From contig JBLDXI010000004.1 of assembly GCA_047495785.1 (NCBI GenBank), positions 2,852,001 to 2,916,000 on the forward strand: DNA of 64,000 nucleotides, written 5' to 3'. Positions 15,753-64,000 of this stretch are shown here, piece by piece. Under the pieces are notes generated by a model. The model saw only the letters and a program-made list of their open reading frames with translations. It searched no databases and was not told where the DNA came from. Both the position numbers and the translations under genes were made by a program. This DNA comes from Lepidodermella squamata. Lineage: Eukaryota > Animalia > Gastrotricha. Position 1 is the stretch's first letter; every line of letters begins with the position of its first letter.

Positions 15753-18700
15753 TCAATAGAACGTCTCGCATAACGCGGTGCCTACCCAATAGGTACAAGG
15801 AATAAAGTAAAAATTCCAATCCCCTGCGCCGGAACCAGAAAGAACAGCACAACCATCTTGAACTTCCCCAGCCACTAGCGAATTGAACGTAAAATTAGAG
15901 CCATCGTCCCATCTGGCGACGCCGCCTTCCCCCGACAGACCGATCCAGTAATCGCGAATATTTTTCTGAGACGCGATTGCAACTTGTAAAGCCAGAGCCA
16001 GCTCGTCGTCTGACCTGATCGTAGCTATCGCAGCATTGTTGGCGAGGCATTTCGCCACAGCATCTTTTTTCATGGTCGAGCCTTCCAAAAGCTCTGGCAC
16101 AAATTTCTTAGTCGCGTTGTTGCAGCTGTTTTTGTCCGGGAACGTGATATTGGCCGGGATTTGAAGCTGAGTCGCCGCTTCACAGCCTGTCGACTGCGGC
16201 ACGCAATGAACTACCCCGTGACTGCCGTCGACGCAGCGAATAAAAAGAGACTATAATTGACGTAAAATTAACTATTTTCTATACGTATCAGATAATTGCC
16301 AGACCTGAGATTGCAGGCATTCAGCGTAGTTGCTGGCAAAGTCTGATTTTGCCCGGAAAATCGATACCTGGAAAATAGACTGGGCGTTATTCCTTCGTAA
16401 ACACAAGTTCTGCTTACCACTGTCATAGGAGATGGGCACGCGTTTCGACAAACGAGTGAACCAGACGCCGAGCATAGGGCTGCAGGCTGAAATATTTCCG
16501 CAATCTTGTATTATCATTGAGGAAAATATAAAAAAACGAACGCCTGTGACGCATTTGTATCTGTCACTGTATGTTCCGGTGCTGTAGGACTGAAAATGCA
16601 GAATAAGAGTATAAAAAATGGGCACGCAACATTCATAAGCAATAGGTAACCTGAGTCATTGAGGCTGCATCACAGGGCGTTGATTGACAGCCGAAAAATG
16701 ACCGATCGATTTGAAGGAAGCATCGATTGTGGGGCATGAAATCGGAATTATTCCGGATAACTGTGAGCATATTAATTGTGATTTTTTTCCATTAATACAC
16801 CACCCTTAAGAGCTTCAAGCTCGTGCGACAAATGATGTGCAAGCACACATTTTAGTTATTTAAAAAATCGACTGAATTAAACGCACTTTTCTCCGACGCC
16901 AAGCAGAGTTGCATAGTTTTATGACTGCCAACTGAATTCTGTGTTAGTTGAAGAAAAATTCAATTTTTAGTCGATTTGATTCAGTGTACGAAGGACTCGA
17001 GCATGAAGGTATTTATCGACTCGAATTTTCAGACCAGGTTTGTTTCTACGAGGCTTTCTAAGTGGACCCTGAGTGCGAAGGACAGGGAAATCGCGAGTCG
17101 CGACACTCCAGCTTCGAGATGTCATCCACAGTAAGGCTGTAAAAGTGGGACCATTTGATTTCTTCGGCTAAGCCTCAGAAAACATTAATGCTTCAGAGTC
17201 CTATTATGCACACTGGAAACCTTTACGGTACCCCTATCGCTGCTCGTACTTCGTACACTACTCAGAAATTAGAACATACCCCGCCATTCGGACATGGGCC
17301 GTCGATCGGAATACACGTTCGCTGTCCGTTGTCACAAACCTTTGCCGGCATATTCTGATTGAATAAAAAAGCACAATAAGCAGCTCACTTGAAGCAACTG
17401 CGGTTTCATAGTAGGCATATTGGGGTTTGTGCATTGTTCTAAGATTCCTTTAACTACAAAAACTAAACGTGAAGTGCCCTCCCACCAGCTCGGTAGTTAG
17501 CACGTGGTGCCATCGACTCTACTGTAAATAAATTGAAACTGCTAAAAACAGACAATGCTGGAAACTGCTAGAAACAGCAAATAGCTACTCAAAACTAAAC
17601 CAGCAGAAGGTAAGGAAGTGCCCCAGAAGTAGGCTGGACAGGCTCGCCCAAACCCATTAGGACGGCGTGCTCAAGCAGCTCGTGTACCCATTGCCGGCAG
17701 ACATTGTCCAGAGCGGAGCCTCGAAGGTCCCAAAACATGACCTGCTAATAGCCATGGGCGACTCCGACGCTAAAGATCTGCATGGGTAAACAAGGGTTTA
17801 CAGAGCATATCTAACGCAGCACGAGTAGCCCTCAAAGCACAGTATGAAGAACTGGGGAAAAAACGGAGGAGTAAAGGGGACAAGCGAAAATGGGCGGAGG
17901 ACCTCGCGAGAGAGTGGGACACGTAGCAGTAGATAAAAGATACCTCGGACGGCTGAATCAAACAACTGACTGTAACAAAATGCCGCAACGAAGGAGAGAT
18001 TCTCGGTTCTCGGTGAGAAAGGGAGAAAGCTGACGACGGAACGTGACCAAATGGCGACTTGTAAGCGACATTTCGATCGGGTGCTAAACAGCCCGAACGA
18101 GCGGCGAACCCAGCGGCGGTCGATTTGGCGACTGCCACAATCTTCCTACGAAGGCTGAAAGCGGCACCGCACGGAGCTAAGTAAAGAAAGGTAAAGCCTC
18201 GGGTCCTGACGTAATTGTGGCCGAGTTGATGCTGGCCAATGACGACGCTATCGCGTATACACTGGTAGACCTATTTAGCGACATCTTGCCAACGGAGCAT
18301 ATCCCAGACGACTAGGAATGCGTTTAGCATGTCGTATTTTTATTTATATAGGCCCTCCGCCGGCCGGCGCTATAGACTAGGATTACGTTCGATAATAAAA
18401 ATAGAAATGCCGAAAAGGTTGGGTTGGGTAAAGCCTGGCGTGGCAAGCAAGAGTCGGCACCAAAATCTAGATATACAATGGGACGGAAGCATGACGGAGG
18501 CGTACCGCCGATCGATCGACAGCTTTCACACAAATTGCCTAAGGCGCATAGTCGGAATCTTCTGGTCAAACGTCATATCTAGCGTTATGGCCTAACAAAC
18601 AGCGAAGCGATCGGCAGTTGTCGAGGCGACGCCTTCGCTGGTAAGGTCATCTGCTGCGATTGCCCGACAAGAGGATACCTAGAACTGCCCGGTTCTGGAG

Positions 18701-25804: not shown

Positions 25805-28800
25805 TTAAAACCGTTCGCATATGGCGCGTTTGGATAAAGAACACGAAGCCAACACAAGTCCGTTCATATTCGCGTGTATACCTGAATTATAAAACACGAA
25901 TGTTATTTGTTAGAATTTTAGACTATTTAAGCCCCCTTATCTCGCTCGCCTTACTCACAGTGTTTCGTGTTATCAGGCGTCTGTGGAATGCCGAGGAATG
26001 TGGCGTTAGCCGGCTCGCCTGTAATGAAGGAATAAGTTGTTGGGTTCGCTCGTTTCGCGCCAATGAACGGCCATTCAGTGTCTGTGGCAATCGTTTTTGC
26101 CTTATCGAACATCGCCTGATCTTTGATAATCGCCAGCGATTTATTGAGGCGCTGGCAAGCGTTCACTGCATCAGCTCGCGTGCCTTTTGATGCCGTGCGT
26201 TCCAAGCTCGCTGGGGTCTGAAAAATTGCATTGCTTTCAAAAAATGAACAAATACTGTCTCCTACTTACATCTCCACAAAGACCGTAACTAGGGCCCGAG
26301 CAGCTTGCATCCAAAATGCCTAACGTTGAGATGCGCATACCTAATTAACACGACAAGTAAGAATACAAACTCGCTGTATTAATCGTGGTTTTCAGACTTC
26401 GACATCGACAATAATATTGATTTAAACTGTACAGACAGCGGTTGGCTCTAAATCATTTGGCAGCTCGGGGATCCAAGATCGCACCCTGGCCGAGGCATCC
26501 CAGCTCAAAATTTCTACTTCGCACACTGGTTTCCGCTGAGCGTACTTCCCTGTTACGCCTTTACAGGTCTAATATTTCACCGCGAGGACAGGATTTCGAA
26601 ATTTTGTCGCATAAACATTTGGACTCAGGAAATGTTTTCAAATTTCAATAATTAATTCATGTGAATATGAAATTATTCATTAGGGTAAAGTGACCTAATG
26701 TGTCATAATTTCGCTTACTTTTTTTCGAGGCCCGATATCTACTCACCTGAGGGGTCCCGGCCCGATTTTGTTTGACAGGGACCTCAGTTAGGGTCTTGGC
26801 TTCGATAATCCGTCGAAAAAATTCGACCCCGATGCCTATTGTGAGTGTGGCAGCAGGTGTTGTGACGCAAGAGACCGATTATGACAAATTAGGAGCCGGC
26901 GCCTATTTCGTCATAATTTTTCGACCAACGGTCCTAATTGTCATAATGGGGTCTAGTTTTTTTTTGACCTGCCGTTATAGGAGTAGGTGAATCGAGGCCG
27001 GCGGATTCGATTCTGAGGTTCAAATCATTCAAAAATTAACTGTTGTCAAGATTTTCCGACCACTAAATGCTCTATGTTGTTTTTAATCCAAATTTTACTG
27101 CCTTTTCCCAGTCAGAAGCACAAATTTTAGGAAATTTCTTCCAATTCGTAGTAATGTGGTGACCCTTCAACTAAAATGCTCTGGTTAGAGTGTAATTTCT
27201 GTTTAGTTGTCATGAAAATAGGCTCCTTTGCATGCTGTACACTGTACATGCCGAATGGCCTTAGCCTAGTTTCCTAACACTAATTAAGGCTAAATAGGTA
27301 ATCTAATATGCCTAATTTCGATCTCGAACAGCTTAATTCGGTATCAGGAATTCTTTGGGGCATCCCTGGCTAGCAAAGGCCGACCATGTCAAGTTGGTAT
27401 TGTTCGGAAATGACCCTATGGCGCTATCTGGAAACTAGTGAAACCGCAAATAAATATGTACCTACCGAGTGCACTAAGATCCAAATTTTTCGATTCTGCC
27501 TCGATCTTAACGTAAATTTTGATGACGGATGGCATCAGCTTACCAAGGTAGAGGAGCCAACCAATAGGATTTGGCAATATTTCCGTAGACTTATCGATTA
27601 AACTCAGATGAACTAAAACCCATTTTGCCATTCGTTCTCACATCTAATCAATCCTACCAAATCTGCTAGATCAATAGTAGCCTTGAATTGGTCCCAGAAG
27701 TTCGTTAATGGGCTCATCAAACTATAGTAGGAGTGATATATGAGCTTTAGATGGCCTTATGATGATTTAAGAATGACAAAAACTCGGCTGGAAATTCCAA
27801 AAGGAAACAAATTTTGGCAATTAAAGGCATAGATGGCATAGATCATAATCGGTCTCTTGCGTCACAACACCTGCTGCCACACTCACAGTAGGCATCGGGG
27901 TCGAATTTTTTCGACGGATTATCAAAGCCAAGACCCTAACTGAGGTCCCTGTCAAAAAAAATCGGGCCGGGACCCCTCAATTGTAAATAAATTCATGGGG
28001 CGGCATGGAACACTGCTATAAATATTAAATAATTCGTTGTTTCATCAAGAAAACTTACATTCCCCAGAGTTTGATGGGGCGATAGCCATCCAGAATGGCG
28101 AATCCATTATAACAGGACTGCCGTCGTCCCACTTGAAATCAGCCACAATGCCAACTAACAAATATAAATAGCCTGCCATCTGCAAGGCGACAGCCAAGTC
28201 ATCCGGCGTGGAGAATGTTGCCAGGCGCCCACCCGCATTTTTACAAGCAACTCTTTGTTTATTAAAGACCCCAATGCTGGTCAGCGCAAAGTACTTAGGG
28301 GGCTTCGTAACGTCAGCTAAGCAGCTTGCGTAGTTATCAGCAAACAACGTGGAGTTTGAGTAAGTTTTAACCTAATAATCCAGGAAAATTTGCAATGAGG
28401 ATATAGTTAACTGTAAAGTTTCAAGGCTCGTTACCTTGGTGGAACCATCTGGGCAGATGTTGTAACACTTCTTGCCATTTTGTGTATTATTACACTGAAC
28501 AGCAAACTAGAGGCAAAATTAAACCGATTCAAAAGCATAATTTCGTACTCTGATCAACTAATACTTCAACCATTACTGGCTGAACTGCTCTCGCCGTTTG
28601 GTGATATATACTATCGTCTAACCCTGAAAACGATGGGCGACGATACCACTGGACGGGCTGAGGGAACTTCATTCATTATTACAGTCACTAACCACTGATG
28701 TCTACATTCTGCTCCTCTTATAAGGCAAGAAGTTTCAGATGGATTAAGGTTTGAAGTATTAACCCAAAAACTAACCTTTGATAAGCAAGTGGCCTTATTC

Positions 28801-31800
28801 CTGTAGACACCAGATGAGAATTGTGCGGTTTCATTTGCCAAGCATGTTGTGCTGTTCAGTCGGCATGCAGTGAACGCGTTAGTGGTGGAATCGAAGCAGC
28901 GAATGTGGGGCTTCACGGAATCAGCTACTGCGCCTGAATAAAATTATAATGCTTGAAGTATTCAAGATATCAAGACGGTTTTTGGAAACAAATAAGTAAC
29001 CCTACTGCAACATTGAAGCTGAGATTCCATCGCTGGATGATAGCTGGATTATAGCTGGATTAGAGTTGGAACTTTCTAATCCCGATTAAATTAACTTGCT
29101 CATTATGGAACCACTCGAAAGTATATTTTTCAACTGCGCACGCTGATTAGACACTAGTCACTAGATACTGGATCGATCTAATGACTCCGGGAAGAAACAT
29201 TCGGCCTAGCGATACATAAAGCGTATCCTGATTTGATGATGTTCGACCATATCCGGGTGCCATGGTTGGGTATCGATGGATATTCAGCCCGCTATTCCGG
29301 CTGCGCCTCGGAACTTTAAAGCTAGCTTCAGGGCCCATATTCATCATCGTATCCTCTATGAATGTACACCCTGATATTATATACAATTTTTGATTTTATG
29401 TGGCAGAAAAAACTCAAAATTAGGGGAAGAATCCACCTGTTTCTCCTTTTGTACTATCGCTACTATGAAATTAGCAATCCACGATGGCTTTGCAGGCTGA
29501 AGATAACGCGAAAACCGATGGCAGGTAGCGCAATTACGCGTAACATTAAAATCTATCGGCTGGGGTCGATACTAAGATTGAGATTCTAGGGCATAAGATT
29601 AACTTGAAATAATTTGTGGTTGAAATCCAGGGCTGGTATCTCAAAGCCAGGGTGACCCTGACTTATCTCAGTGAAATGAAAATCATCCGTAGTCCGTAGA
29701 ATATAGAATATCAAACAAACTTACTGCCGAAATTTTGAAGACACGCATCCAAGCTAGCGAACCCTGTTTTCCCTTTCACCTGAAAAACAGAAGGTATTAA
29801 AAGGTACAATTTGGCGGCGAAAGATTACCGTAGCATTGGAGCAGGGAAAATTGCTAGGAATGCATGTGACGAATTGCTGAGCCGAATCGACACATGAGTC
29901 AAATCTCTGTTTCTGTTCATTCGATTTGTGTCAAGTTATCAAAATAAGTCATGATTTATTACCAGAAATCGGTTCAAATCCGTAGTACAATTGTACATGT
30001 TATTTCTCAGCGGTAAAAAGCCGTTGTAAGAGCTGCCGATCTATAATTTAAAATGCTAACGTTAGTGGCAGAATGACAGCGATAGAAACATGGGATTAAG
30101 AGTGCACGTTTTTTCTTCGGAAGAAACAACCGTAAATACTGAATTTTCTAAGGCTGAAATAAAAGGACATGGGTTCACCTCAGAATTTAAGACGCGTTTT
30201 GGCCATGAAGGGATGAAATCACTGCTCTAAAAAAAGTGGTTCTAAAACTATTTCCTCTTCCAGCAAAATGTTTTCTTTCGATTCATGCATACCTGGCAGA
30301 TCAGATGTCCTATTTTCATCGCCGCCGCTGGCGACCTTTCCTGTGACATTACTGCTTGACCCCTTGGCCGACTTGTACCTTGGCCCCTTTTTGTAAACTA
30401 CTGGATTGAAGCCGTCGAAAGATCCGTCCGGCCGCAATTCAAGAGTGGCACACCTCTGCTGGCCGGCGAGGGTTTATCTAGCCACCCTCAACACGTCCCA
30501 AATTTCGAGCATTTTGGCTATTGTTGCTATGGAGGTTTTGAGATCCATTTAAAAAAAAACAAATCCTCTGTGCATCGAGGCGTAAAACCGTCTCCCTGTT
30601 AAATTTTCTTAATCTCTTGTGAATCCACCTCGGAGTAATAACTGAGGCTGCAATCTGTAATTGACAGTAATTGTCTTCAATCAAAGTCACGGAGCCGAAT
30701 TTGATCTTTTAAGGCTAATTACTGTTCATCTAAAGCAGTGGTTCTCATACCCTGGCATGCGAGCCAATCGTGGCACTCTAAGAAAACTAATTGGCATGCG
30801 TGCCAAAAATGGCACGCGGAGGGTTGTGACTGCGTGCTAAGTGTGAAATCAGATTGCCCATTTCCCCTTTTTTCTTCATTTTAATAGGTGAAAGATGCGT
30901 GAAAATTTTCTCGCTTCACTTGTTTGATCGGTTCGAATTATCCAACATACCTAAACATACCTACCGTATTTTGCCCTGTATTTAGGGTCTGCCCTCTATT
31001 TCGGTTCTGCTTTTTATTTATTTGAAGCTATTCAGTCACGGAAAAATACCTAGATCAACCTAGATAAAACAGCTATAGCTACTGCCTTCCATCCGTGACG
31101 TAACGTGGCGTGTATGCTCAAGTGGATTAAGGTGGATAAAGAATAAAAAACGATTAACGCACATACTGACGAAAATCGCAACCTATCCAACTAACACCAC
31201 TTGCCCAGCAGGCGCTAATGTAAGCCACTTCATATAAATAATTCAACTGATGCGCACGAGCCAAGTCCTGATTTTTAACAAATTTTAAACCGCGCGCGAA
31301 GATGCAACAGGGTTACTTTCAAATATTGCGTCGGTTTTTATACCAAAAAAAATTCAGACAATTCACTATCGATTGAACATGGGGTTCTCGCTCGAAAAAA
31401 TTCAAATAAAAAGTTTAAAAGTACAAAAAAGGTACGCGCACCTGAAATTTTGCGCGCGAGTTGAGAGCTCGCCCACTCGCTTGTCAAAAGTTCGGATGTG
31501 CGGTAAACGTTTTTCCGTTAATTCTTCACGCGAGAAATCCATATCTAGTCGATAGAGAATTTTCGGAACTTTCTTTTGGTATAAAAACCGCCTAAATAAT
31601 CAAAATTTGCCCTTTGACTTTACCGCACGCGGCCTTGAAATTTCCATAGTTGTGCGCGTTTTGTCCACTTTTACCCTCCGACTGGACGGAACTAATATGG
31701 GCCTGGAATTGAGCTATTAATACAGTTCTGCCCTTTATTATTTCAAATGATCATTGCTGTCTGCCCTTTATTCCGGTTGCACATTTACGGATCCGCGGTG

Positions 31801-34334
31801 GTTTCCTCCGGTCACTAAAAAGCCGCGAAATGCTAGTTTTCACTAACAATTAATTGCCCGCACGCTATTGGTCGATTCAAAAATAAGCGCGGGAGTCGCA
31901 TTAATGCCACAGCGAAACAAAATAACCGTCGACTTCACAGATTCATGGTTAATAATGCAGACCGGCGCAAATAGAAGAGCCTCATTTTTAGATGCTGTTA
32001 CAAGTGGATTTTATGTGAAAATGATTGGAACAATTTTCCAAAAAATCCCAAATACAGTGAAATCAATAATTGGAAAAATTTGCAAAGGCTGTGATTTTCA
32101 CCCGAATATCAACATTTTCCTGGCTGAAAATTAGAAAAATTTGGCATAATCACCCAAAACGATCGCCCAAAAATTCAACGAAAATTGTCAATGAAAAGCG
32201 CGGAAAAACTGGACGCTAAATCACAGGTGGACTAGAATTTTGAATATCAATAACAAGTTTTTTGTTTTATACGGGTGAGGTTGTCACAAGTCATTACACA
32301 TTACAGTATGGCAGTTTTTACGTTCGTTCATGCTGCTTTCGTGGCTATAGTTTTTTTCCTTCAGTAGTAAAATATCACATAGCAATAAAACTTGCTAACG
32401 CTATTTTTTGCAACACACAACAATTTCCGCGCATTTATTAATTAGGTCACTACACACAAGTTATGAATGGCTTGCAGCCAGCTCAGTGCGTGCATTGCGA
32501 TCATCTTCCGTTCTTATTTCGACAAAAATTAACGATAAAATTGGGCCTTCGAAATTAAAAAAAATAGGGGTATTTCTTTCTGCCATTCAATTGAAAATTA
32601 TAACTTAATTTGTGGCCATCGATTTAAAAGCAGCAAATGGATATTAGGCAATTTTTATTTATAATTTTGCAAAATGCCAAGCGTAAAATTTGTCGCATCA
32701 AGGTGATTTAAATTGCTTGCAAATTGAAGCCTTGGCTTATTTTTTCCAATAATTTTTGCTAAATTTTTCTTTCGAAATAAATAATTTATTCATTTCTTAG
32801 TGGAGTAATTTTCACAATAAGTCAATTTTTGCAGTTTGTGAGAATGTAGGATGTAGGTCTTAATATTCCCGTCTTAATATATCCGTCGGTCTTGACTTTT
32901 AGCCACAAACCTGCAAAGTCAACCGTTGTTTTGTTTTACAGTGGCATTAGTGCGGTTCCCGCGTTTATTTTTGAATCGACCAATAGCGTGTAAGCAAATA
33001 ATTATTATGGAAAACTAGCCTTTCACGGCTTTTTAGTGGCCGGAGGAAACCACCGCGGATCCGTAAATGTGCATTCCGGTTCTGTCCTACATTTGGGTCC
33101 TGCCTAATAATTCGTAAAATACGGTAAATTACGTGAACACAGAGATGCAAAATCCTTGATGAAAACAGCTTTTGAGGATGAATTTCGGTCTGCGATGAGT
33201 TGACGAAAACCAGCCTGGTTTGTCGCAAGAATTTCATGAGCTAAAAAAATGAAGTATGAGCGGACACCGCCGATTCGAAAAAATGGAAATGTGGCTCTTT
33301 TGGCGAAAATCGCCACGGTTGACTGCTATAATTAGTGATTTTCGCGTAAAATATCTGAGAAATGTATGACGAAGTTTTTCCGAGGTATGCTATAGCTTGA
33401 CGACCCGCACCTTAGTGGGTCAGCTCATGCTACTTTTCGATCAGATTAATAAGGATAAGAACCGCATCCGATTAAAGGCCGCCGAGTTTTTGGGCCTTTT
33501 CCAGAAAATAGTCGCATATTCAACAACTTATTCAACAATTTATCATAACTGATAACTGACATGGAAATTCAATGTTTGGATCCTATCCATAGATCACGGA
33601 CCTCCATGATCCCATAAAATCTCTACATGTCTTCTTCAAAGGCAATGCCGCCATGATATTCAAAAATCGGCATAAACAGCTCAAAATCCAACTCGAATGA
33701 TAACTCGAATCAAGAATTGGAAAATTTGACGCGGCTCTGTGAGCACTGGTTTGTTTATCGCGCACTGGCTAAGCGTACACAAAGTGTGTTAGGATGATTG
33801 GCTACTTGATCACAGCGAGCGTTAAAATCTAGGTGTGCGTGACGCAATCACGTCCAGATAAATTCGGAATGGTGAAAATTTGTTAAATTTTCCAAAAAAA
33901 TCATGAATCGTCTTCATGAAAGAAAATTGAAATTTCAACTAACCATGATCTCGCCTTCTTTCGCACAGCCAGGGATGCCCGGTCGGCATATCGCTGCCTG
34001 AGTCGCCAATCGGTAGCACAATCTAGCAGTCTGTGGATGTAACACAATTCAATTAACAATTCAAGCCGCAAACACAATCGAAAAAAGAAACTCACCGATG
34101 TCATGCACTTTGATTTATCCGACCAACTTCCGCCGAGCTGGTGAAAGAGAACAACTTGAAAATTATTTAGGCAGGTTAGAAATTATTAACCTGGTATTCG
34201 CTCAATTGAAAACAGCCGTTTGGTAATTCGCGGCAACTCGTGAACGTATCGTCGAATTGCGAGAAGCAGCGAGCCCATTCGCCACACCGAACCGTATCGA
34301 TTGCGAAGAAAAAGACGAGGAAAATTGGCTTCAT
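25805..34334 (-). CDS. Gene B: secreted protein with five four-Cys modules and two C-type lectin-like domains (475 aa)
   Basis: Twelve exons splice in frame (1428 nt): 34334-34191, 34137-34096, 34030-33944, 30040-29963, 29912-29829, 29779-29725, 28933-28776, 28494-28435, 28371-28059, 26340-26270, 26217-25959, 25881-25805. Signal MKPIFLVFFFAIDTVRC; CTLD motifs GGRLAT/FKWDDGS and FIGAKR/AICE. Confidence 0.85.
26681..27979. mobile_element. Intronic DNA-transposon derivative with ~135-bp inverted repeats
   Basis: 26748-26885 is the reverse complement of 27843-27979 with few mismatches. Left terminus tagggtaaagtgacc. Confidence 0.75.
31309..31613. mobile_element. Nested MITE with long imperfect TIRs
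   Basis: cggtttttataccaaaa / ttttggtataaaaaccg, plus ctatcga/tcgatag inverted segments. Confidence 0.55.
31779..33072. mobile_element. MULE-type non-autonomous element, 9-bp TSD ATTCCGGTT
   Basis: ~60-bp TIRs beginning gcacatttacggatccgcggtggtttcctccgg; TSD at 31770-31778 and 33073-33081. Confidence 0.9.
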
Positions 34335-41700: not shown

Positions 41701-44700
41701 CCGGAGAAATAGAAGAATAAGCGAAAACAAACGATTTCAAACCTTAGCCCTAATGCGGCCGCTGAAAACCAGTAGCAGCGGCTGAAATGTGTCAACGGGT
41801 AAAGTCTTTTGCAGAATTTTAACACGATTAAAGCTATATATTCACACAATGCTTAAAATTCATGCATCGACGTCATATGGCCCCATAAATCACGAAGGAT
41901 TGCGGCTACAACGCGTTGAAACGTCCTCTAACAAGGATGGTATGGTATCAGAAAGCCGACCCAGCGCTCGAGTTAGGGCGGCAACACCAGCATTTTTCTG
42001 CTTTATTGTCAAACTGACATCTTCTCTTAGCAAGTTCACTTATGTTGGCCAAAATTTAACCGCTAAATTATTTGCTACGACCAAAAATATCCCGAAAAAC
42101 CCGAAAAAACCCGAAAAATGCATGCCAAGCCACTTAAAGCGGAAAACCGCGTTGTCCAACCTAAAAGTAATGGTAACAAAGAAATATACAGTTTATTCTA
42201 CAAGAAAACCATGAGAAAGATTGTTCTTACCAGATTATTTCATGAAATGGGCTATCCTTAAGGTTTCTGATCTGACTCAATGATGACGTCTAACCAGAGT
42301 GTGTAGGGCAGACGAAAGTCGATCCTGCGCTCGAATTACGGCGGCAACACTAGCTTTTTCCTGCTTTGTCGTCATATTGATATAGTCTCCAAGCAAAATC
42401 ACCCAATTTTACCCATATCTGACCGTTGATTATTTCCCAGCATCAATAAATGTTCCGATAAACCCTAATAACTCCATTTTAACGTCTAAATGCATCCTAA
42501 GCCGTAAAACGAGAAAAGCCACGGTGACCCCCCAAAAAGACATGGTAACTAAGAAATTTACACTCTATTCTACCAGAAAACAATGAGTAACAATGCTAAT
42601 TAAGCAAAATTCATGACATGGACCATCTTGAAGATCGTTCATCTTGCCAGAGGATGAGATCTAACACAGCAGGTATGGCAGAAGGAAGTCCCTCCTGCTC
42701 ACGAGTTAGTATGGCAACACCGACTTTTTCTTGTTTCATTGTCAAAGTATTTATGTCTCCTAGTGAATTCACTCATTTGAGCCCCCATTTGACCGCTGAA
42801 TTGTTTGCTAACTTTGTAAATGTTCCGAATATCCCGAAAAACTCCATTTATCGACAGAATGCATCCATAGCAGCAGCAAGTGAAAAACCGCGGTGACCCT
42901 CCAAAAAGTAACGGTAACTAAGTAGTATTTACTCTGCTTTACAAGAAAACAATGAGAGACAGTGTTTTTGACGGGTGATTTGAAAGCATAGACCTCCTTG
43001 AAGATGGTGATAATGAGATCTATGCTCTGAAAGACCGGCTGGCTGTTAGGGCAGACGTGCTAAAAATAACCATCATCCTACAAAAACGGCTGTGGTAATC
43101 TTGTAGAGAATACATTACTGTACTTAGAAACACTGTTTCCGCAAGGCATAACCGCACTTAGGTGAAAGTTTCCGGGGTTAAACGCTTAAGATCTGCGAAA
43201 AACGGCATAAAAATGGCTTGTTTAGGCTTAGCGCATACGTCTAATTGAGCCATATTTAGAAAAAATGACGCCGGCTGCCTTATTAAATGCTTGAAATGCT
43301 ATCAGAAAAACACTAACAAAGGTGTCGTCACCGGTGATAAAATGCGGAATTACGGGGATGAAGTTGCGCGCCGGGGAACTTGCGGTGCGCGGAGCGGCTA
43401 CAACGCGAAAACGCGCGGCATCGCGCAGCACGCTTTTCCGTAGCAACAAAATTTTTATTTAAAAAAAATTATTAATATAATAAAATATAAATATTTTTAA
43501 AAGGATATTTAATTTTGTGCATAAAAATTTGCGGTAGCGCGCGATTTTCCAACGCGCGCGGCGGATGTTCGGTTTTAAAAAGAACACCCTGTATTGATCT
43601 TACTCTAAATTATCTAATAATATAGAGAAAAAATGCTATTGGTTTTGTGAGCTTGGACGCCTGCCTGAAAAGTATCAGCAGTAAGTTGATTTTCAAATGT
43701 AGAAATTTGTTTACCAACTTGTTTACTACAAAAAAAAGAAACATCGTAAAATTTCCTAATTATGCATCGAAATTATATAAATAATTTTTAGATAGGTAAA
43801 GCCATGTCATTTATTGGAATGCTCGGACCAGCGACCGATGTGTTAGCCTCACTGAGTCTTAAAATTGACAAAAACCAACCTCACGTCTCATTCACTTGTC
43901 CTATCAGGCCTCGTCAATGCTAACATGAAATTTGGTTAGGAATGGACTTATTTTTGTTTTATTCTTGAGAAATTATTTAGGACGGAACGACGAGACGCAG
44001 AGGTTTTTTCGCGCTGTAGCGTTAAATATTGCGAATTAGACACTCATATTTTTACTGTAGCTAATCCTAATAGCCTGCCGTATGGGCGCAAAAAATATTT
44101 GTCCCCGGATGTATTGTTACGTAACAGCAATTTTACAAAGTGGTCGGACGGAATGACGCGCAGGAATTCATAATTTTGAAAAACTATTTTTCGGCTTCAA
44201 ATTCTCTGAATCTTCTGGGCGAAACAGCATGATCATATTTTTACATAGTCTACCAATGAGTAAATAATGAAAAAATGCATTCGGTAAGACCTGATAGCTT
44301 ATTGTATGGTTACGCCGCATCACATTTCAATGTAGGGTCATCAGGACGGAACGACAGGACGGAACAACGCTCTGATTATCTCAGCAACCCTGAGGAATTT
44401 CAAAAAATAAATTAGATATTCTGAATGAGCGTGAAAAGTTAGGGCGGTGTGCAAATTTGCGCATGATTTGTGAGTGATTTGCGCGTGATTTCGGCATTAT
44501 CTGCGCATACGGCTCTCACCCGTGTTGAGCGCGAAGTTCATGTGCGCGCGCGCACTCACACGCACATGCACGCGCTGTTCCACTATCCCGCCTTATTTCT
44601 TCCCCATTTTGGAAGATAATCGCGCGCAAATTAGTATCCCTTTCTAACTTTTCATGCTGATTCAGAATATCTAATTTATTTTTTGAAATTCCTCAGCGTT

Positions 44701-47700
44701 GAAAAGTTAATTTTTTGTCGTTCCGTCCGTCGTTCCGTCACGTGTCGTTCCGTCCATGTGATTGCGCAACATCTATAGCATCTGACCGGAAAATTTTTCG
44801 GCCAAAATGTTGCCAACAAATATAGACGCAGCTTTACCCATCCCCGAGGCCTTTAAAAGTGCACCGCTTAGTTGAAATCGAATTAGAAACAATAATTGAT
44901 GGACGGAACGACGCGACAGTGTCAAAAAATGTAACATCACCTGGTCAAAAAATATTTTGACTACGGCATCGAGCAATGTCTCAAATTGAAGCTTACATGG
45001 TCAACAACATTTAAACATATTAATATTACATAAGCACTTTCAACTGTCGTCAAAATGTTGTTGGGAAAAATTCCATCTTTTGGCATTTCGTCAATGTCAA
45101 ATGTGTACCATTTTTGACAAGGTAAAAATCATGTTAACTGACAAAACTGACTATAGTCATATATATTTTCTGAACGCTCATGTCCAGGGCTTTCTGGAAA
45201 TATATAAATTTCTATCTAAATCGCGAATTTTTTTTCCGGTGGTCAGGTTGACAGTTACACGTTTTTACCTTTTACGTTTTTCATGAAGAAAAAACGAGAG
45301 GATTTTTATGAAGACACTCATAGAGAGAACAATGGATTTGGTATCATCGTTATTTCCCCTCAAATTAATTATTATTTTCTCTGCGAAATAGAAAACAATC
45401 ATCATAATATCGTTATCTATATCCGTGAAGACAAGCGTACATAGCTCTTTAAACTTCTTTAATTTTTGGTCCCGTAATGGGCGGATGTGTAAAAATGGCG
45501 CTTTCAATGTGCTTAAAACAGCATTCTTCATGCAATTTTCTCGCATAAAAATACGATAATGTGTCAAAATTTGGGACAGCCTTGGGGCCAGGACATCATT
45601 CGCGGCCCCAAATTTTCCCGACCAACTGGATGCCTAAATATCTCGAATGGTCAATACCACCTGAAAAATCTCAATTTAAAGGAAAAACGCAGATGAAAGC
45701 TTTGATGGTCGAAAAATCACTGATTATCGATTTTGTTCGACTATTTATTGTTTAGATTACGATGCCAAAAAATATTACGCATACTTTATTATACTACTGC
45801 TCGCCTGAATGTTTTGTTGTCCATTGGCTTTCTTGTCTGTTAATAGATGTAGTCGCTGACTCAGTGAAGCCGCACATCCGCTGCTTCAATTCAGTCACTC
45901 GAGAATTCACTGCCTGCCGATTGAGCAGCACGCGATGCATCGCCAATGAAACCGCAGAGTACTCTGCTGGTACCTATCGAAACAAAGCCAACTGCTTGTC
46001 TTGGGTAAAAGCATATTTTTCACAATTTTCAAGGTGGAAGTGAACCAAGTCGCGGTAACCCTTACTTATTGCAAAATTCTAATTGTTTCAAGGACAGGGG
46101 GTCGCTTCATGATCATTTTAAACAACATTCGGATATGAACGCTTTTGAATATTAAGGTTTAAGTAACCTTAATATATTAGGGAGTTCGAATTTTTCAATT
46201 CGAAAATTCAAAATCCAAAGTACCGTTTTTTATAGCAATTTCAGCCTTACAATACGTGAAATTCTCTCGGGCTATTCGTTGATATACTTCATAATACACA
46301 TTGGAACTATTTTTTTCTCTTTTCTCAGTTCGTTTCTCAATGTGATACGCCGAGCGGAAAGAAGTGCTACAACATTTAGCCCGGGAAGACGTTTTAGCTC
46401 AGTTACGGGCCCATCATCGTAGTTTCGTCCGATGAGCAAGCGTCGGTTGTGTAACGCTGATTTTAACGACATTTTGAACATTAATCCGCGACGGTTAGGC
46501 TAGTTTTAAGTCCCAAGTTAGATAATGTGCACAATTAACGTCTAATTTTGCCTAAAATTAAGATTCATTTTTCTGGGCTATCACAAGACTCTCTCCGCTC
46601 TCTCCGCCACATTTGTAAATTGAAATCGTACATTACCTACTTGGAAAGATTTAACCGGAGGCTAATTTGGGGTGTATTGGTACTTCCGCACAGCAAGAAA
46701 TATCTGCGCAGAAATTTTCCGCACATGTTACTTGCGCACAATGCATTCCCACTCATACTGTTTATGTAGCTGATCAATCCTTAAAATAAACAATAACGCG
46801 AAATCTTCCTTAGGACGAGAAGAGAAATAGGGGAACATTCATCAATCGTCGAGATCAATTGCTGCGTAGACGCAGCTAGTTCATCGCCACCGGCCTCAGC
46901 CTCACAATACCCGTTGTGATACTCGTCGACTGGCGTCTCATTCTCGCAAACGAGTGCGACGTCGGTCATGTTGGCCGAGCAGGCATCCAAACTCCATGAA
47001 GCCGATCTTCTCAGCGTCGAGGTCGTCCCACAGCCGTTCAGTTGTCGCTTTAAGCCGTTCGTATTTCTTGTCAGCTGGCTTTTTGCACATACGAGCGTCA
47101 ACTCTGGCCCAGTCTCGACGGGTAAAACGGACTCTTCGCGGATGAGAAGAGAAGAAAATCGTCAATGCTTATGCGAGAATTCCATCCTGATAACACACAA
47201 AATTGAGAATTTTAAGCAAAGTTTAATGGAAATTAATTTACATTCGACGATGTTGTTGGTACCAAGTCTGCTAATTGCTCATCTTGTTATTGTTTTTCTT
47301 TTCAATTCCAAGGTGCGTGGTTGTTCAACATTGGCATAATGACTGATTCTGATTGCAATGTGCCCGCGTTCGCTCTATGTGGCAATGTAAGTGAAGCTTA
47401 TTGCTATAAGCTCTGCATCTGATTTTGTTGCGCTCTGCATTTACCTAATACCTAGATACTCTATTTTTCACGAATTTTTACAATAGACATCGGCAACCAT
47501 TGAAAGAATCAACACGACTGCAAGTCGAGATGAACAGGTAAATAATTGCGCAACCCTCGGAAAAACGCTGGCCACGATCAAAGATCAGGCGACATTGAAC
47601 GATGCCTTGGCGATTATGTCTGATCCGCCGCATTTAGTCGGGGCGAAACGGCGGGACCTGGAAGCCTACCCTTGGATAACAGGAGAGCCATTCAACAGTT

Positions 47701-47883: not shown

Positions 47884-48261
47884 TGCTCACTGCCGATCTG
47901 ATTCGAATGTGACGATTCGAAGCAGCTACGCGAAGCCTGGATTCAACTGTCTTCATAGATTCGACTTCTTGTCCCTTTCTTGTCACTAATAATAGCTTTT
48001 ATGCCGATGTTATGTAGAACTTCTGTCTAGTTATTTCGACAATTAGGCCAATTAAGAAAAAATAAAGATAACTTGACCTGAAAACATTTGAATGAAAAAA
48101 ACCGGTTTGCTATATTTGAATCCTCATTTTAGCGGATTCCAGGTGAGGTTGTCAGTCGTCAGCAGGGCTGGGGCGTTAAACAATATGTTTGAACATACCG
48201 CAAAAATAGGTCAGAAACAGTTGAAAAAACAGAGGTTATACAGGTTGTATCGTTTTTACTG

Positions 48262-49734: not shown

Positions 49735-52157
49735 CGGTGTGGCTATTGGCACATGGTTATGTGCCCCTTTTTGGCTATTGGCACATTTTATGTGCCTCTT
49801 ATTGGCTATTGGCACATAACATGTAAAATGAGTAGAAATCGTAATTTATGTCATTATTTGAATGAAAAAAGTTACTACCATCGTAATTCCGGCGCGTGGA
49901 TTTGAGTTGATTTATTCACTGACGATTTTTTTTCCCGGCCACGTGCATTTAAACAGCATATTAGAAGCGGGTTTATAAGTGTTTATGATAGTCTTCTTTG
50001 TAGCATCTTTATCATGGATGACGCTTTAGAGATAAAAGTCGGCGATGTTTTTCCTACTGGTGAATCGTTTCTAGCCAAGTATGACCTGGTGAAAACAGCC
50101 GGTAAACATCCTTTTCGTGTTCGGTCCACCTCTGAAACCCAGATTATTCGCCAATGTCGGCACGGTATTCTCAGGGCGAGTAGATCAACTGGGAAACGAG
50201 AAACGCAGAACTATCTCTTTCGAGATTGTCCCGGTATCGTTAAATGCTCTTACTCAAAGATCACTGACTGTTGGGAGGTTACTGAGTCTAATTGGACTCA
50301 TACCCACCCTCTCGGTGGAAAATGGTTTCCGAACGACAATCGTCTCACAGAAGAAGAAGTAAGCAATACCGTTAATTTGATCAAAAACTACGCGATCAAA
50401 CCTAGCCTCTTGGCCAGGGTTGGGGCTGTTTAAACAATCTGTTTATACAGTATGTTTAAACATACTGTTTAAACAGGTCCGAAAAATCTGAAAAAACAGG
50501 GTTTATACAGGTCGAACAGTGTTTTAACTACGATCTAACTTAAATGGTATATCGGAGCATAAAAATATAGATCAGGTTTCCCTAACATTTGCTTATGATG
50601 TAGCTGATGGTAGATATAAGCTCTGAGCTCTGAAGAAACAATCGAAAATGGCTGAGTAAATGTCAATCAGTCAGCTGATCGATCACCAATAACCGATAAT
50701 CGATAACCGATAATCGGTGTCGAATGCTATAAAGCTGATGTCACCAGCTTGTTCAGCGGCAAAAGTTACCCTAGAATCCAAAGTTTCAAGCCTCTATCTA
50801 TCATAATAACGAAGATATCGCGAAATCAGTTCATGCTTCCGGTAGGGTATAATTGGGCGGTTTCGTGCCTTTAAAGTTGAAATGTTCAAAAAAATCGGCA
50901 AAACCGCTTCCTTTGACCTTGGAAACCCCCTTAGAAACCCCGGGGGGAACCTTTTCACGGCGGATCCGAATACGTTTTCAGAATTTCAGTAGCTGTCATA
51001 CTTCCGGAAATAATTGCATTTTTTGAATTATTTTATTACTTTATTGCACCTTCATCATTTTGTCTTTCTGAATGAGAAAATAGTCGAGTAATACATCAAA
51101 CTATGCAGTTTTTCACGCAGAATCACGTGGTGCAACTTAAAATTCAACTAGAGATACAGTTGACGAGATGTAGCTCGGAGCAAAATACCCATTTTTACAC
51201 TATCTGTATATATACCTGTTTAAACATGTGTTTAAACGTTTAAACGTTTAAACAGATCCGAAATTTGAAATATCTGTATAAACCCCAACCCTGCTCTTGG
51301 CAAGAAACATCAAGAAAAATACAGGTAATAAATGCAACATTCTTCGATATTCTCACTTCACTTTTCACATTCAAATTGGTTTAGGAAAGGTTGTCTCTAG
51401 AAAGTTTATCAACAACCTAAAGATGAAACATCTGTCGAATGAAGTCCACCAGGCGGAGCTCAGTAGCTTCATTGATGACATCAAGGCAAACGGAGGCGTA
51501 GTGGAAAAGCGTGATGATGGCGATGGTGTCACTCAAGCCATGTTTATTGCTACGCCAAAGATGATTGGTACCGTGGCAAGACAAAGGCCTCGAACTGTTC
51601 TCCTAGATACCACCTTCAAAACCAACAAGGAAGGATACAAAGCCCTCTGTTTTTGCTACAAAAATGCCGATAACGGTAGAACTGGCGTCGCTGGCATAGC
51701 CCTGCTTGAAGACGAATCGGACGATAATGTCCGATTTATTTTGGAATCTTTCAAAACTATCCACAAGCCGGGCATCTTCCTTGTGGATAAGGACCTTCAT
51801 CCAATTGATTTGGTGGAAAAAATATTCGACTGCATAGTTTTGTTGTGCGCCTTTCACGCGTTGAAATATATGCGAAACCTCATTGCTACAGCAGTTTGTC
51901 GATTGGAAGTCAAAAAAGAACTATCCACCGCTTTCAAGGATATGGTACACGCCCGCTACGAGCCTCAATTCAAAACGGCAGAAAAGGCATTCGTCTCCCT
52001 TGCTAAAGGTTTGGAAGTACGAAAGCCTGGCGGTAAACCTAACGAATACATTGAGCTACTGCCTTATTTCGAACAAAATTGGTTGGCATCAAAGGCGATG
52101 TGGGCGAAATATGCCCGCCGTATGTACGAAACTATGAATCAAGATACGACCAATTAG
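49735..52157 (+). mobile_element. MULE/Mutator transposon, 3'-truncated; transposase CDS 50014-52157 interrupted by a hAT MITE and one intron
   Basis: Left end cggtgtggctattggcacat (motif x3). N-terminal C..HG...C...W.V...HTH zinc/WRKY-like domain; catalytic motifs LDTTFKTN, LVDKD and LLCAFH; ends at DTTN*. Confidence 0.85.
50415..51293. mobile_element. hAT-type MITE, 8-bp TSD CTCTTGGC, GTTTAAAC repeats
   Basis: CAGGGTTGGGG...CCCCAACCCTG; TSD at 50407-50414 and 51294-51301. Confidence 0.95.
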
Positions 52158-56991: not shown

Positions 56992-57419
56992 GCAAAAGGT
57001 GATTTTGTATTTACAATTTTCAAACAGATGCAGTTTAGAAGGCGCATGCAGCTTGGGCCAAAAATTCAGCTAACTGGTTAAGCGTCACGCTCCACTAGTC
57101 ACGTACCTCCCCCACAAAGAGGGAACGCGCCGGCCTTGCGTGATGCGTCGGCTGACCGAAAAAAGAAATGTTAGCACCTATCGAACACTGGCTACGAGCT
57201 GGTGTCAATATTTTCGGGGCGACACCATGCCTCTTCACAGCAAGGGCGTTCGTAACAAGTTGGGAGCTTTAAAATGTCCTTAAATTTGTCCTGAAAACTC
57301 ACCCCACCCCTTCTACCGGGCGCGATTACGTCAGGGCTATTGGCTATTGGCTGAAACTTTGCGAAAATGTAGAGGACACCCATCTCAAGAATTGGTGTAA
57401 AAATGAAATGGATATGTTG

Positions 57420-57825
57420 TACGGCTATAGGGGATTTAGGCCTTTAGGGTATGAGCATTGTATTTAACCAAAATAATGGCCAAACCGTGAGGGTGACTAT
57501 CGATCATGATATATCAATTGATTGCTGTAATTAAGGGCTATCGATTAGTGCCAAATCGAATTCCGCGCGGAACTTTTGGAAATATGATTTTTGCCTTCAA
57601 AGTTAAAAAATGCGGAAATTTTGCGTTTTTTGGCCATAGCTTGACCCTGAGTGTGCCGCGTGGAATTTGACTTGGCACCAATCGATAGCGCTTAATTACA
57701 GCAATCGATTGATATATGATGATCGATAGTCACCCTCACGGTTTGGCCGCTATGACAGTTTAAAATATTGCTTATGCCGTATAGGCTTAAGCCTATACCG
57801 TATAAGCTTAGATCCTCTATAGGCG
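57420..57825. mobile_element. Foldback/MITE with ~90-bp inverted arms
   Basis: 57478-57570 is the approximate reverse complement of 57656-57748. Confidence 0.75.
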
Positions 57826-59703: not shown

Positions 59704-61225
59704 TCATTCAGCGTAGGTTTCGCATATCGCGTAAATCATCCAAGCGCCGCACGGAGAAAACTCCATCTTAGAAGCACCTGCCAGCAGGTTCCCGCATCGA
59801 TCTGGATAGTACCCATATACAATAAGGTCTGGATTGTATGTGAATGCCGAACCGTCCGACCATTTGTAAACGCCGGAATATGGATCAAGACCCATCCATG
59901 CATTATCGTGTGGGGGTCCAACATTGTGAGCCTGGGCTATTTCGGCAGCCGTTTTACCAGTTGCCAATATGCTATCCAATTGCGAGCACTTTGCGGCTGC
60001 AGATGAATAATTAAAATAACCGCCGGGGTTATCAACCATGAACACAATCCTTCTAGCGTTTTGACACTGCCATTCGCCGCTGAACGTAACATTTGCAGGA
60101 AAGCGAATCTCAGTGTTGGCGTCACAGCCATTCGAGCTCGATCGGCAAGTTACTGAACCGTCGGCAGTTCGCAGGCACCGATGAGTAGCAATCTATCAAA
60201 ATATGTTATCACTTAGTAAAAAGTCTGTTGTTTTTATGCCTCTTCATTCAAGTTAAAAAGCCGCTTTTTAATTGTCACCTATCACCTTGAAGCAGGTGCA
60301 GACAAGCCTAAATTCGAGTTATTCAACGTCGCTAACGATAAGTTTACTACGAAATACGAAATCTTGGCTCGAAATAAACTCACATGGGGCGATATATCAT
60401 TGACGCAATTGTTGTGGTTTAGCCGAAAGGTCCCCAAGTTCGAGAACAGCTTATCCTGTAAAGAAAAGCGGTTGATACCAGCTAAAACCATGCTTTTGGC
60501 TGAGCTCTACCTGAGTTTGACCTTGAGGACAAGCTGCGTAGCAAGATAGTCGGTTGGATGAATCCTTGCACGAAACGGCATTCTGTTAAACGAGGGTAAA
60601 CGAGAGAATAGAACTGATTTTAGTTAAATTGCTAAAACAGAAGAGCAACTTACTCCGAGCAGGCAAGCTGCACGGTTGATGTAAACTTTCGTCGAGTACT
60701 GCTGCGTTTCATTGCCAGGAAAACAGCCGGAGCTTTGCGGTCGGCAGTCGTTGAACCTTTTGGTCGTAGAATCAAAGCACCGAACATGCGGCTTTTCGCT
60801 GACCGGAACCGTGACTGTAATGTGAAACGGGAAATATCAGTAATTTTTCGCCCATGTTCGTACCGATTTTTTTACTGGGAAAATCACTAACCTGTTCCAT
60901 TGGTACATGACGTGAGAGTTGAATAAAGAGTCGATTCAGTGACCTAGAAAAACAAGAATCAGCGTTACACAGCAACACATCAGACGTTTCCACGTCGCTC
61001 ACCCAGTTGTTAGGGCAGGAGAACGGATCCGGAACACAGGTCTTGATGACGCTGTTCGATGTGCAGCGCCTGAATTTCGAAGTCTGGAATGATACAAATA
61101 AAAAGCGTAATACGTAATGGCCTAGTTTCCATAATTCTAACCTCGAATACAGCTTTCCGTTTCTCACATTCGTTAAGGTTATATTTCAAGCTCAACGTTG
61201 GCTTCTGATCGTCGAACCAGAACGT
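59704..61225 (-). CDS. Gene E (3' part): paralog of gene A, four-Cys modules plus one CTLD; 5' exons lie beyond the window
   Basis: Exons 61225-61142, 61083-61003, 60943-60892, 60814-60654, 60582-60511, 60455-60384, 60192-59704 splice in frame. Motifs KPHVRCFDSTT, AWMGL, YKWSDGS and AICE. Confidence 0.8.
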
Positions 61226-61777
61226 CTTATTATATTATAATAGCATATATTATAACAAAAATGAGAATGACAAAAAATAACAATAGCAAAAATAACAAAC
61301 AACACTTCAACAGATAGATCTCTCCAGAGTTAATGTAGTTTAGATGACTGTGCAACAAATAAGGCACGCCATCACTTTATAGGCCACCTAACGCCCTTTC
61401 TGCCCTTTCTAATTTTAATTAATTTTAAAAATCGAAAAAGCCACAGGTGCCACTTTCAAAAATTTTGGATTTCTGCGAATAAATACTGGAAACGGCCCTC
61501 TATCTAATGATATGAGATGAATATTGTGTTCTCTCACGGATAATTTGTTATAATTCGCGGAAAAAGCAGGGTATAATACCGACCGGATTTTTTGTTGAAA
61601 TAACCACCCACCGGTTTGAACCGGTTTTTTTAATACACCTTTTTTCATTTGCATTTTCATAATGTGCAAAACCAATTTCACAAAGGCGATGTTTGATCGC
61701 GTGTTCTCATATTTAAATTTGATTTTTTTTCTCATTATTTTCATTTTATTACTTGCGCTACTTTTTTCGTTTCCATC

Positions 61778-62515
61778 ATGGCTTCATCTGAAGTTTCTAT
61801 AAATAACACTAGCGCGCACTTCTCGCCAGTTTCTCCAAAAACTGTCATTGTTGAAACAGCAAGGCGCATTACGCTGCGTTCACGCTCAACGGTGAAAACC
61901 CCAAATCTACAACAGCTTATCGAGAAAAAAGAGACTGAGAAAGCTAAACAAGCTGCTAAACAAGCTGCTAAACAGAAGAAAAATCGCGATGCGGCAGTCA
62001 ACAAGCGGCGCGGAAGGCCGATGAAGAACGCGGATAAAGACTCTGTTTTAGCGGCCGGTCCTCCACTGCCACTGCCGAATCTGTCCGGCTTTCCAACCTC
62101 ATTTGGTGCGTCCTCATCATCGACTTTTCATACGCTAGCCACGGGAATGTCCGTTTCTCCCGATTCGGCAGGTACCTCAAACCAAGGTTCATTTGGTTCG
62201 TTTGTTTCCGCGCCGCCAAATTTGCCGCATGATACAACAGGATTTCAGGCCCCGAATGTGACTTCAATGCAACTGTACTGTCAATCCTCGCGTGCAAAAA
62301 GACAATGGAACCCGTACGAGATAAGCCTTCTGGAATGGGTCATCTGGTACTGCAATTCACTGGGTGATAAACCTTCGGAGCAGATGGTCGATGACTTTAT
62401 CGCTTGGTTCCGCAATACTGGTCGGGGCGATTTTTCAGCTTTGCTGCGCCGCAACTCTAGAGCGATTTCTTACAAAGCCAGCCAAGTCATCAGGGATCGC
62501 AAAAAAAATAAATAA
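61778..62515 (+). CDS. Transposon-borne 245-aa protein: basic helix, AT-hook, Ser/Pro linker, C-terminal Myb/SANT-like domain
   Basis: Intact intronless ORF inside the TIRs. KRRGRPMK; KRQWNPYEISLL...RNSRAISYKASQV; AATAAA at the stop. Confidence 0.75.
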   Translation: MASSEVSINNTSAHFSPVSPKTVIVETARRITLRSRSTVKTPNLQQLIEKKETEKAKQAAKQAAKQKKNRDAAVNKRRGRPMKNADKDSVLAAGPPLPLPNLSGFPTSFGASSSSTFHTLATGMSVSPDSAGTSNQGSFGSFVSAPPNLPHDTTGFQAPNVTSMQLYCQSSRAKRQWNPYEISLLEWVIWYCNSLGDKPSEQMVDDFIAWFRNTGRGDFSALLRRNSRAISYKASQVIRDRKKNK

Positions 62516-62642
62516 AACTTGAATTTGAAGCGTTTAATTTGATGAAGAAGAAATAAATCATTACTTCAGGTGTTTGCTCCTCACAGTTTTTATTCAACTT
62601 TTAATTCTCGCCAATTTCGAAATCGCAATTAATGTTTGATAT

Positions 62643-63704
62643 TTAACCCATTATTGGTTCGCTCGCGATGCAGGCTGGTAGATAGTTTAGCACATGGCGA
62701 TCGCAATTAGCCACAAGTTCAGGTGTAATAACTGCACGAAGATGCCTTTCAATGATTTCACTCAAAAATTCACGACGGGTATTTTCTAGAACAGCGCCAA
62801 CAACACGCGCAGCCTCGATAAGCTGGTAGTATTCCAGCCTACGCATAGCTAGTTCGTTTTTTATCGCAGCTTTTACAGCTGAAAAAACGTTTTCGATAGG
62901 GTTCAAAAACGGCGAATATGGTGGGAGAAATTTGAACTGATGCAGCTCCCACAGCGGAAAATCGGCGTCAGGATAATGGCTTCTCAAATTGTCCAGAATA
63001 ATGACAGCTTCGTTTTGATGGCCAATTCGCTCGCTAGTTTGCGTGGTAAACGTTGCGAATCGTTCAGCAGTCATGCCCCTTTCAGAAATTTCGTAGTAGA
63101 CCAGCCCTCTAACAGGTGAAACTACCACCGCCACAGACATATTTTTGCCGGGAGAAGCTGTCGGCAGTAAAACATAGGCTCGCTGTCCTTTCGGCGCTCT
63201 GCCACGGCCGCGACGAGTCCAAAGCGAAACGCCAAATTCGTCTTGGTAGTAGTGAATTTGGCGATTCCGGATATCAGAGAACCAGAGCGCATATGCGGCT
63301 CGTTCCAAAATAACATCAGCCCGGTTGCGAGCAGCGGGATACGGGTGAAGACGTTTCATCGTAATTAGGGCGCCATCCAATTTTCTGTGGATCGTCGTGA
63401 TCGAAAATTCTGCATTAAAATTTTGCAGCAGTCTCATCCTGAGATCCTCCAACGTCAGCTGGGAGTTTTCTTCGATTACCCCAACTAAATGTTCAGTAAA
63501 CTGAGCTTCCCAACGGCGGGGAGCACCTCCTCGATGCTCAGCTTCAATGCGAGCATCGGTGCGATATGTGTTGATGATATTATACATGGTTCTGTTAGAA
63601 ATTCCGAGAACCTTTGCAGCCGCATGAAAATCTTCGCCATTTTCGAAGGCAGTTACCAACCTTTCCCTGTCAATATTTGATGTCCTTTTGTACGCTCGCG
63701 GCAT
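62643..63704 (-). CDS. IS630/Tc1-like DDE transposase (353 aa, DD32E)
   Basis: N-terminal HTH regions; YYQDE, IILDNLRSH and LPPYSPFLNPIE, with 32 residues between the second D and the E. Confidence 0.95.
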   Translation of the reverse strand: MPRAYKRTSNIDRERLVTAFENGEDFHAAAKVLGISNRTMYNIINTYRTDARIEAEHRGGAPRRWEAQFTEHLVGVIEENSQLTLEDLRMRLLQNFNAEFSITTIHRKLDGALITMKRLHPYPAARNRADVILERAAYALWFSDIRNRQIHYYQDEFGVSLWTRRGRGRAPKGQRAYVLLPTASPGKNMSVAVVVSPVRGLVYYEISERGMTAERFATFTTQTSERIGHQNEAVIILDNLRSHYPDADFPLWELHQFKFLPPYSPFLNPIENVFSAVKAAIKNELAMRRLEYYQLIEAARVVGAVLENTRREFLSEIIERHLRAVITPELVANCDRHVLNYLPACIASEPIMG

Positions 63705-64000
63705 TTAAACGGATATCGAATGAATATTTTTTCAATGGAAAAAAATTTACTGATGTTATTTACAACTCCAAGTGAAACGCTGATTTTATCGCTTTTACGG
63801 TCAATTTCCGGCAAATTCTCAATGAAAGATAGGAAAAATAGTGAAAAAATGAAAAAAATGAATACGCAGAAAGAAATTGGCTCGTGCTAAGAAACCATTG
63901 TGAAATTTGTTTTGCACATTATGAAAATGCAAATGAAAAAAGGTGTATATGCAAAAATCACTGAAATGTATTATTTGACATAGCCAAAGCTTGCTAGCAT

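Follow-up and report, generated by a model that had tools for sequence, protein, structure and literature searches.

A Two-Gene ITm Transposon Lineage with a Conserved Partner Gene Predicted to Encode a Helix-Turn-Helix Protein

The stretch of DNA analysed here (64 kb, referred to as the window) contains an ITm (IS630-Tc1-mariner) transposon which, beside its transposase, carries a second gene, ORF2, that is a real, lineage-level gene. The C-terminal domain of ORF2, about 75 aa, recurs in tail-to-tail arrangement with both of the closest transposases that were found (50-55% identical), and ORF2 is under purifying selection in the resulting two-gene clade. The domain is predicted to adopt a helix-turn-helix (HTH)-like fold, and a second HTH-like gene suggests a two-protein way of working. 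The window element itself looks autonomous and is of the cut-and-paste ITm type, with TA as its insertion site. Its features are:

61634..61635, no strand: left TA target-site duplication (a single TA at the empty site of sequencing run X1)
61636..63945: ITm element, 2310 bp (2.3 kb), intact
61636..61686, plus strand: left terminal inverted repeat (TIR), 51 bp, begins CACCTTTTTTCAT
61732..61753, plus strand: T-rich subterminal stretch 5′ of the ORF2 ATG, with an inverted counterpart at the opposite end (22 nt, 86%; of low complexity, so that chance is possible)
61778..62515, plus strand: ORF2, 245 aa, pI about 10.3, uninterrupted
62003..62026, plus strand: AT-hook-like motif KRRGRPMK (aa 76-83), which doubles as a basic NLS-like patch
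62291..62512, plus strand: conserved ORF2 domain (aa 172-245), four helices, predicted homeodomain/Myb-SANT-like HTH fold with an extra helix
62552..62557, plus strand: candidate AATAAA poly(A) signal for ORF2, from sequence only
62589..62594, minus strand: candidate AATAAA poly(A) signal for the transposase, on the same basis
62643..63704, minus strand: ITm transposase, 353 aa, with two N-terminal HTH motifs, an RGGAPRR linker and the triad D155-D238-E271 (DD32E)
63840..63861, minus strand: subterminal stretch, inverted relative to 61732-61753, 5′ of the transposase ATG
63895..63945, minus strand: right TIR, 51 bp
63946..63947, no strand: right TA target-site duplication

The transposase (minus strand) and ORF2 (plus strand) are convergent. 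As the first-pass annotation had described, they are two uninterrupted ORFs (353 and 245 aa) lying tail-to-tail; their stop codons are 127 bp apart, with one AATAAA per strand in the gap, and their start codons are found 142 and 241 bp inside the element ends, which are the distances given there. Judged from the open frames, both genes are apparently intronless. The TIRs had been called near-identical and about 49 bp long; the former is correct (49 of 51 positions are identical, with two mismatches), but the measured length is 51 bp. The first 13 bp of the left TIR are also the TIR start of a related element, L001. TA is present on both sides and occurs once at the empty site, in accordance with the proposed duplication. 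No second copy of the element was found within the 64-kb window, and an Rfam search of 61000-64000 gave no match.

The transposase matches Pfam DDE_3 (E 2e-22). Its catalytic triad is intact with spacings of 82 and 32 (D-82-D-32-E), as expected from the DD32E assignment. The two HTH motifs correspond to HTH_23 (aa 12-49) and HTH_32 (aa 39-107), both under the curated cut-offs, and RGGAPRR at aa 58 is a GRPR-like linker. The element has the DDE_3 triad, the paired HTH motifs with a GRPR-like linker, and TIRs with a TA duplication, all of which define ITm elements. These normally have a single ORF (PMC8533490), in agreement with the earlier remark that they usually encode only the transposase, though multi-ORF exceptions exist. 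This habit, which is typical rather than strict, is broken by the second conserved ORF of the window element.

The nearest named matches of the transposase are Anopheles funestus DD34E and fish DD35E proteins, and identity to named relatives is 30-38%; a scan of metagenome contigs gave no match. In a quick tree of 69 sequences with SH-aLRT support, computed without curated Gambol and Hiker references, the two-gene clade is a branch of its own, with a marine and mostly DD30E group at its side, and is separate from the groups that contain the Anopheles DD34E and the fish DD35E proteins. It resembles the Gambol (DD34E)/Hiker (DD35E)/Dici side of ITm in its DDE_3 transposase with PPYSPFLNPIE, its TA duplication and its short TIRs, but differs in the presence of a second gene and in the spacing, which is DD32E (window) or DD29E (L001 and L008). 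By spacing, the element is not Gambol: that of Gambol is DD34E, that of the window transposase is 32, and L001 and L008 both have 29.

The first-pass annotation had proposed a search for the same gene pair in relatives, and the pair was found tail-to-tail in L001 and L008, so that ORF2 is not unique to the window copy. The best transposase match, P0001 (50% identical), lies within a complete element of 1980 bp (L001:110-2089), which has 49-bp TIRs, with the same first 13 bases as those of the window element, and a TA duplication. Its convergent ORF codes for 149 aa and has 37% identity to ORF2 over the C-terminal 82 aa. The best match of ORF2 in a search of 1.8 billion representative proteins is P0121 (E 2e-15), encoded tail-to-tail with the L008 transposase, which is 55% identical to that of the window over its C-terminal part. 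A fourth homolog, P0122 (L009), is on a contig of 765 bp where no element context is visible. The transposases of the window element, L001 and L008 form a single clade (SH-aLRT 100), and the distance from ATG to TIR is similar in the three two-gene elements (137-182 bp). There is no ORF2 match in six sister elements of about 28-38% identity (L002, L003-6, L011, L012, L014, L015), which have AT-rich 3′ spacers of 154-561 bp; the right end of L014 was not located, and the contig of L007 ends too early for it to be counted. Judged from these sequences, ORF2 appears to have been gained once, at the root of the two-gene clade, which has three members.

The L001 and L008 transposases are DD29E and have a GT-AG intron of 51-52 nt at the same codon position, so that "DD32E" and "intronless" apply only to the window family. 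Both copies are decayed: the L001 transposase is interrupted by a stop at codon 7 and, late in the frame, by a frameshift, while ORF2 of L008 is frameshifted 3′ of its AT-hook. The window transposase is without this intron, which indicates intron gain or loss inside the clade. An internal-deletion derivative of the L001 family, which is non-autonomous and without the ORF2 domain and the transposase C-terminus, occurs at two further sites, L010 and L013. The positions in these relatives are:

L001:984-1034: common intron
L008, near 5840-5891, minus strand: common intron
L010:94-558: derivative of the L001 family, with a deletion of about 520 bp (L001 1163-1680)
L013:494-1117: derivative with the same deletion, from a different sample

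A homolog search with full-length ORF2 gave no match, nor did the ORF2 profile when contigs from metagenomes, viruses and prokaryotes were scanned with it. A recently captured host exon had been named as a possible source of ORF2, but no host gene with the ORF2 domain was found among the 1.8 billion representatives. Two groups of candidates were rejected. Convergent ORFs beside P0009 (L002) fall beyond its inverted-repeat end, and the ORF2 profile gives no match to them. The long proteins P0123-P0136 are most likely spurious; the three that were scanned are FG-GAP repeat proteins in which many weak stretches had been summed.

In several single-gene sisters (L002:4785-6419, L011 and L012), both ends are rich in short subterminal repeats (TCAAATGT / TTTGACA-like), of which the two-gene elements appear to be devoid; possibly the two groups organise their ends in alternative ways. 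In two of four flanks of the L001 family, CACGTG is found just outside the TA (L001:101-107, L010:84-93), which is probably due to chance.

Across six pairs, pS of the ORF2 domain is 0.79-0.88 and thus saturated while pN is 0.38-0.44; transposase pairs have values of 0.82-0.90 and 0.34-0.40, respectively. The ORF2 domain is constrained nearly as tightly as the transposase, and neutral evolution, which would have spoken against a functional partner gene, is countered by this between-family comparison. Constraint between families on a transposon gene usually reflects service to the propagation of the element itself. As the constraint matches that of the transposase, we suggest that ORF2 serves in this way.

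From N- to C-terminus, ORF2 consists of a basic motif, a K/A/Q-rich helix, the AT-hook, an S/P/G/T-rich linker and the helical domain. An ORF of this length did not occur in any of 5000 shuffles of the region. The N-terminal two-thirds are poorly conserved, and ORF2 length ranges from 149 to 245 aa. An AT-hook is found in two of three ORF2s, those of the window and of L008 (KRGRGRPK), while L001 has only a basic patch. Across the four homologs, 18 columns are invariant, four of them Trp, and the last helix is AI(S/A/C)(Y/H/C)K in all four. The start WNxYE and the R-R...I..K C-terminal helix resemble Myb/SANT.

The designation of ORF2 as an AT-hook/Myb-like partner could be upheld in part. The AT-hook-like motif is present, but a Pfam search with the four members (E≤10) returned no Myb/SANT or MADF match and only a weak one to DUF7763; the HTH-like fold comes from structure models. 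Two models of the domain (pLDDT 84 and 88) match HTH DNA-binding domains, though with weak structural scores; for the second model, such domains are 40 of the best 50 structural matches. An ESM feature score of 0.80 between the domain and Rap1-Myb is taken as a lead only. The homeodomain recognition-helix signature WFxNxR is absent from the last helix in all four members, and a duplicate of the transposase HTH region was rejected by an hhalign probability of 0.1.

Our preferred reading, to which we give slightly less than even confidence, is that ORF2 is a trans-acting DNA-binding helper at the ends of its own element. Each gene would be transcribed inward from its own end, with termination in the 127-bp gap at a separate poly(A) signal. 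The transposase would recognise the TIRs by its own two HTH motifs and would cut and join, while the ORF2 product, a small basic protein of the nucleus, would bind DNA via its homeodomain/Myb-like domain, assisted by the AT-hook in some members. Acting in trans on terminal or subterminal regions of its own family, it might maintain the activity of the promoters at the ends or guard them from silencing, or it might bend and stabilise the ends for the transpososome. It would improve the spread of the element without being an obligatory TIR-binding subunit. As the ORF2-less derivative sits at L010 and L013, ORF2 is not needed in cis. Of the earlier proposal that an ITm lineage had acquired an accessory DNA-binding factor, the second gene is borne out as constrained at clade level, while its DNA-binding role is a prediction from models.

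Purifying selection would fit equally well if ORF2 were cargo directed at the host or a means of counter-defence, with host chromatin or silencing factors as its binding partners or host genes as its regulatory targets, and with no action at the element ends; it would then be retained for the protection or advantage that it gives its carriers. Its layout of basic region, low-complexity linker and HTH is transcription-factor-like, and the L009 domain is without visible element context. However, linkage is tight, the tail-to-tail layout is constant in the three elements whose context is available, and their ATG-to-TIR distances are similar; together with the lack of a host paralog among the representatives, this makes such a role unlikely. 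We consider it slightly less likely still that ORF2 is an obligatory subunit of Harbinger type, which binds TIRs and transposase, mediates nuclear import of the latter and is indispensable for excision. The window transposase retains its own bipartite HTH, and the single-gene sisters L011 and L012, with nearly the same TIR start (CACCTTTTT), have no partner gene; an accessory role is for these reasons the more likely one.

A tether which bridges the transpososome to AT-rich DNA or to particular chromatin would agree with the AT-hooks and with the insertion of the window element after a T-run. We regard it as improbable, as the L001 ORF2 has no AT-hook and the flanks of the window element, L001, L010 and L013 have no clear common motif beyond TA. 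There is similarly little probability that ORF2 is carried along neutrally or is a fragment without function for element or host, or that its domain is not HTH. The weak structural scores and the poorly conserved, length-variable N-terminal part point in this direction, but 18 invariant residues are retained in the four homologs at saturated synonymous sites, a 6-nt insertion in the X1 copy (see below) is in-frame, and the lack of profile similarity to the transposase HTH region argues against simple duplication. Neutrality of ORF2 is largely refuted.

In run X1, a contig with an exact match to the left flank (depth 79.7) joins 61633 to 63946 and shows the site as it was before insertion, with one TA. 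Another X1 haplotype, which differs slightly, is likewise without the element (depth 82.6). As X1 holds the exact empty site, we infer that the insertion is polymorphic and recent. The element body is nevertheless covered end to end in X1 by contigs that are near-identical or about 92% identical to the window element, some of them frameshifted, at a contig depth of about 230, which does not equal copy number; the simple reading is that copies exist elsewhere in the X1 genome. The main X1 copy differs at several sites, including the in-frame 6-nt insertion in ORF2, and thus X1 is probably another individual than the source of the window. At least six changes occur in ORF2 within the window family; among those listed, three are silent and three are replacements, the latter all outside aa 172-245. 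One X1 contig connects both TIR regions (61663-63900) with 2236 bp missing in between and may come from a MITE-like derivative of the window family, with only 20 letters on the short side. In run X3, guessed to be RNA, the element is thinly covered, with chimeric joints.

The left flank contains high-copy repeats (60880-61230 and 61335-61512; X1 contig depth 700-3000). Two C-type lectin domain exons (Pfam Lectin_C) are found at 15756-16250 and 59707-60192, both on the minus strand, the second about 1.4 kb from the element; lectin genes of this type point to an invertebrate animal as host. Pieces of a Mutator-like (MULE) transposase with a FAR1/AFT-type N-terminal region are at 49906-52154 (plus strand), and an inverted match (48176-48245 / 50443-50512) is close by. 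MITE-like or foldback elements with long inverted ends are located at 9825-10364, 26748-27979 (137-bp arms, 98%), 31778-33073 (TTCCGGT on both sides, a duplication of at least 7 bp), 44345-44739 and 57417-57805. A 441-codon open frame (2052-3374, plus strand) with a CPRC...H motif and no Pfam match resembles, by eye, an EnSpm/CACTA-type transposase fragment.

In PIF/Harbinger elements, the transposase is accompanied by a second, small and rapidly evolving gene, the product of which is a helical DNA-binding protein similar to Myb/SANT (PMC9179366), consistent with the first-pass view of this trait. The window element also pairs its transposase with a small gene for a protein predicted to be HTH-like. 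However, its DDE_3 transposase is unrelated and has its own HTH domains, the duplication is TA and not 3 bp, and the ORF2 domain is C-terminal, with an extra helix and no Myb/SANT Pfam match. PIF/Harbinger membership was rejected on the basis of transposase and duplication. The excerpts of two papers describe TBE and Tec of ciliates as multi-ORF Tc1/mariner elements with extra ORFs under purifying selection, one of them reversed, which code for a 22-kDa protein of unknown function, a 57-kDa zinc-finger/kinase and a tyrosine recombinase (PMC7325037, PMC4724952). These elements have three ORFs and are confined to ciliates, and the excerpts report no HTH/Myb partner. Second ORFs also occur in the L31 'duo' elements of bivalves, an ITm group of the DD37E lineage, and in Mariner-Fanzor elements, where Fanzor is a RuvC nuclease; ORF2 is without a nuclease fold. 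A possible working model is provided by VANDAL/VANC, Mutator-like elements of Arabidopsis, for which an excerpt describes an element-encoded anti-silencing protein that binds non-coding DNA of its own family in trans (PMC10398659); superfamily and host differ, and the suggested likeness is one of working mode.

In the open-access literature we found no report of a Myb/SANT- or HTH-like second ORF in Tc1/IS630/ITm elements. Multi-ORF ITm elements are already known from TBE and Tec, and the HTH-like partner gene is a new variant. It is possible, though we hold it doubtful, that a two-component mechanism like that of Harbinger arose independently in an ITm lineage whose homeodomain/Myb-like partner, belonging to a family known to date from these elements only, is needed for transposition or steers it. 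If true, the same helper design would have arisen by convergence in transposase superfamilies that are unrelated.

Elements of Tc1/mariner type are the textbook case of transposons that work with one protein, and gene-transfer tools are based on them. The retention, within a clade, of an HTH-like second gene at transposase-like constraint points to an undescribed accessory step, be it end activation, anti-silencing, complex assembly or targeting. As the window copy is intact, apparently intronless, only 2.3 kb long and insertionally polymorphic, the role of ORF2 should be directly testable.
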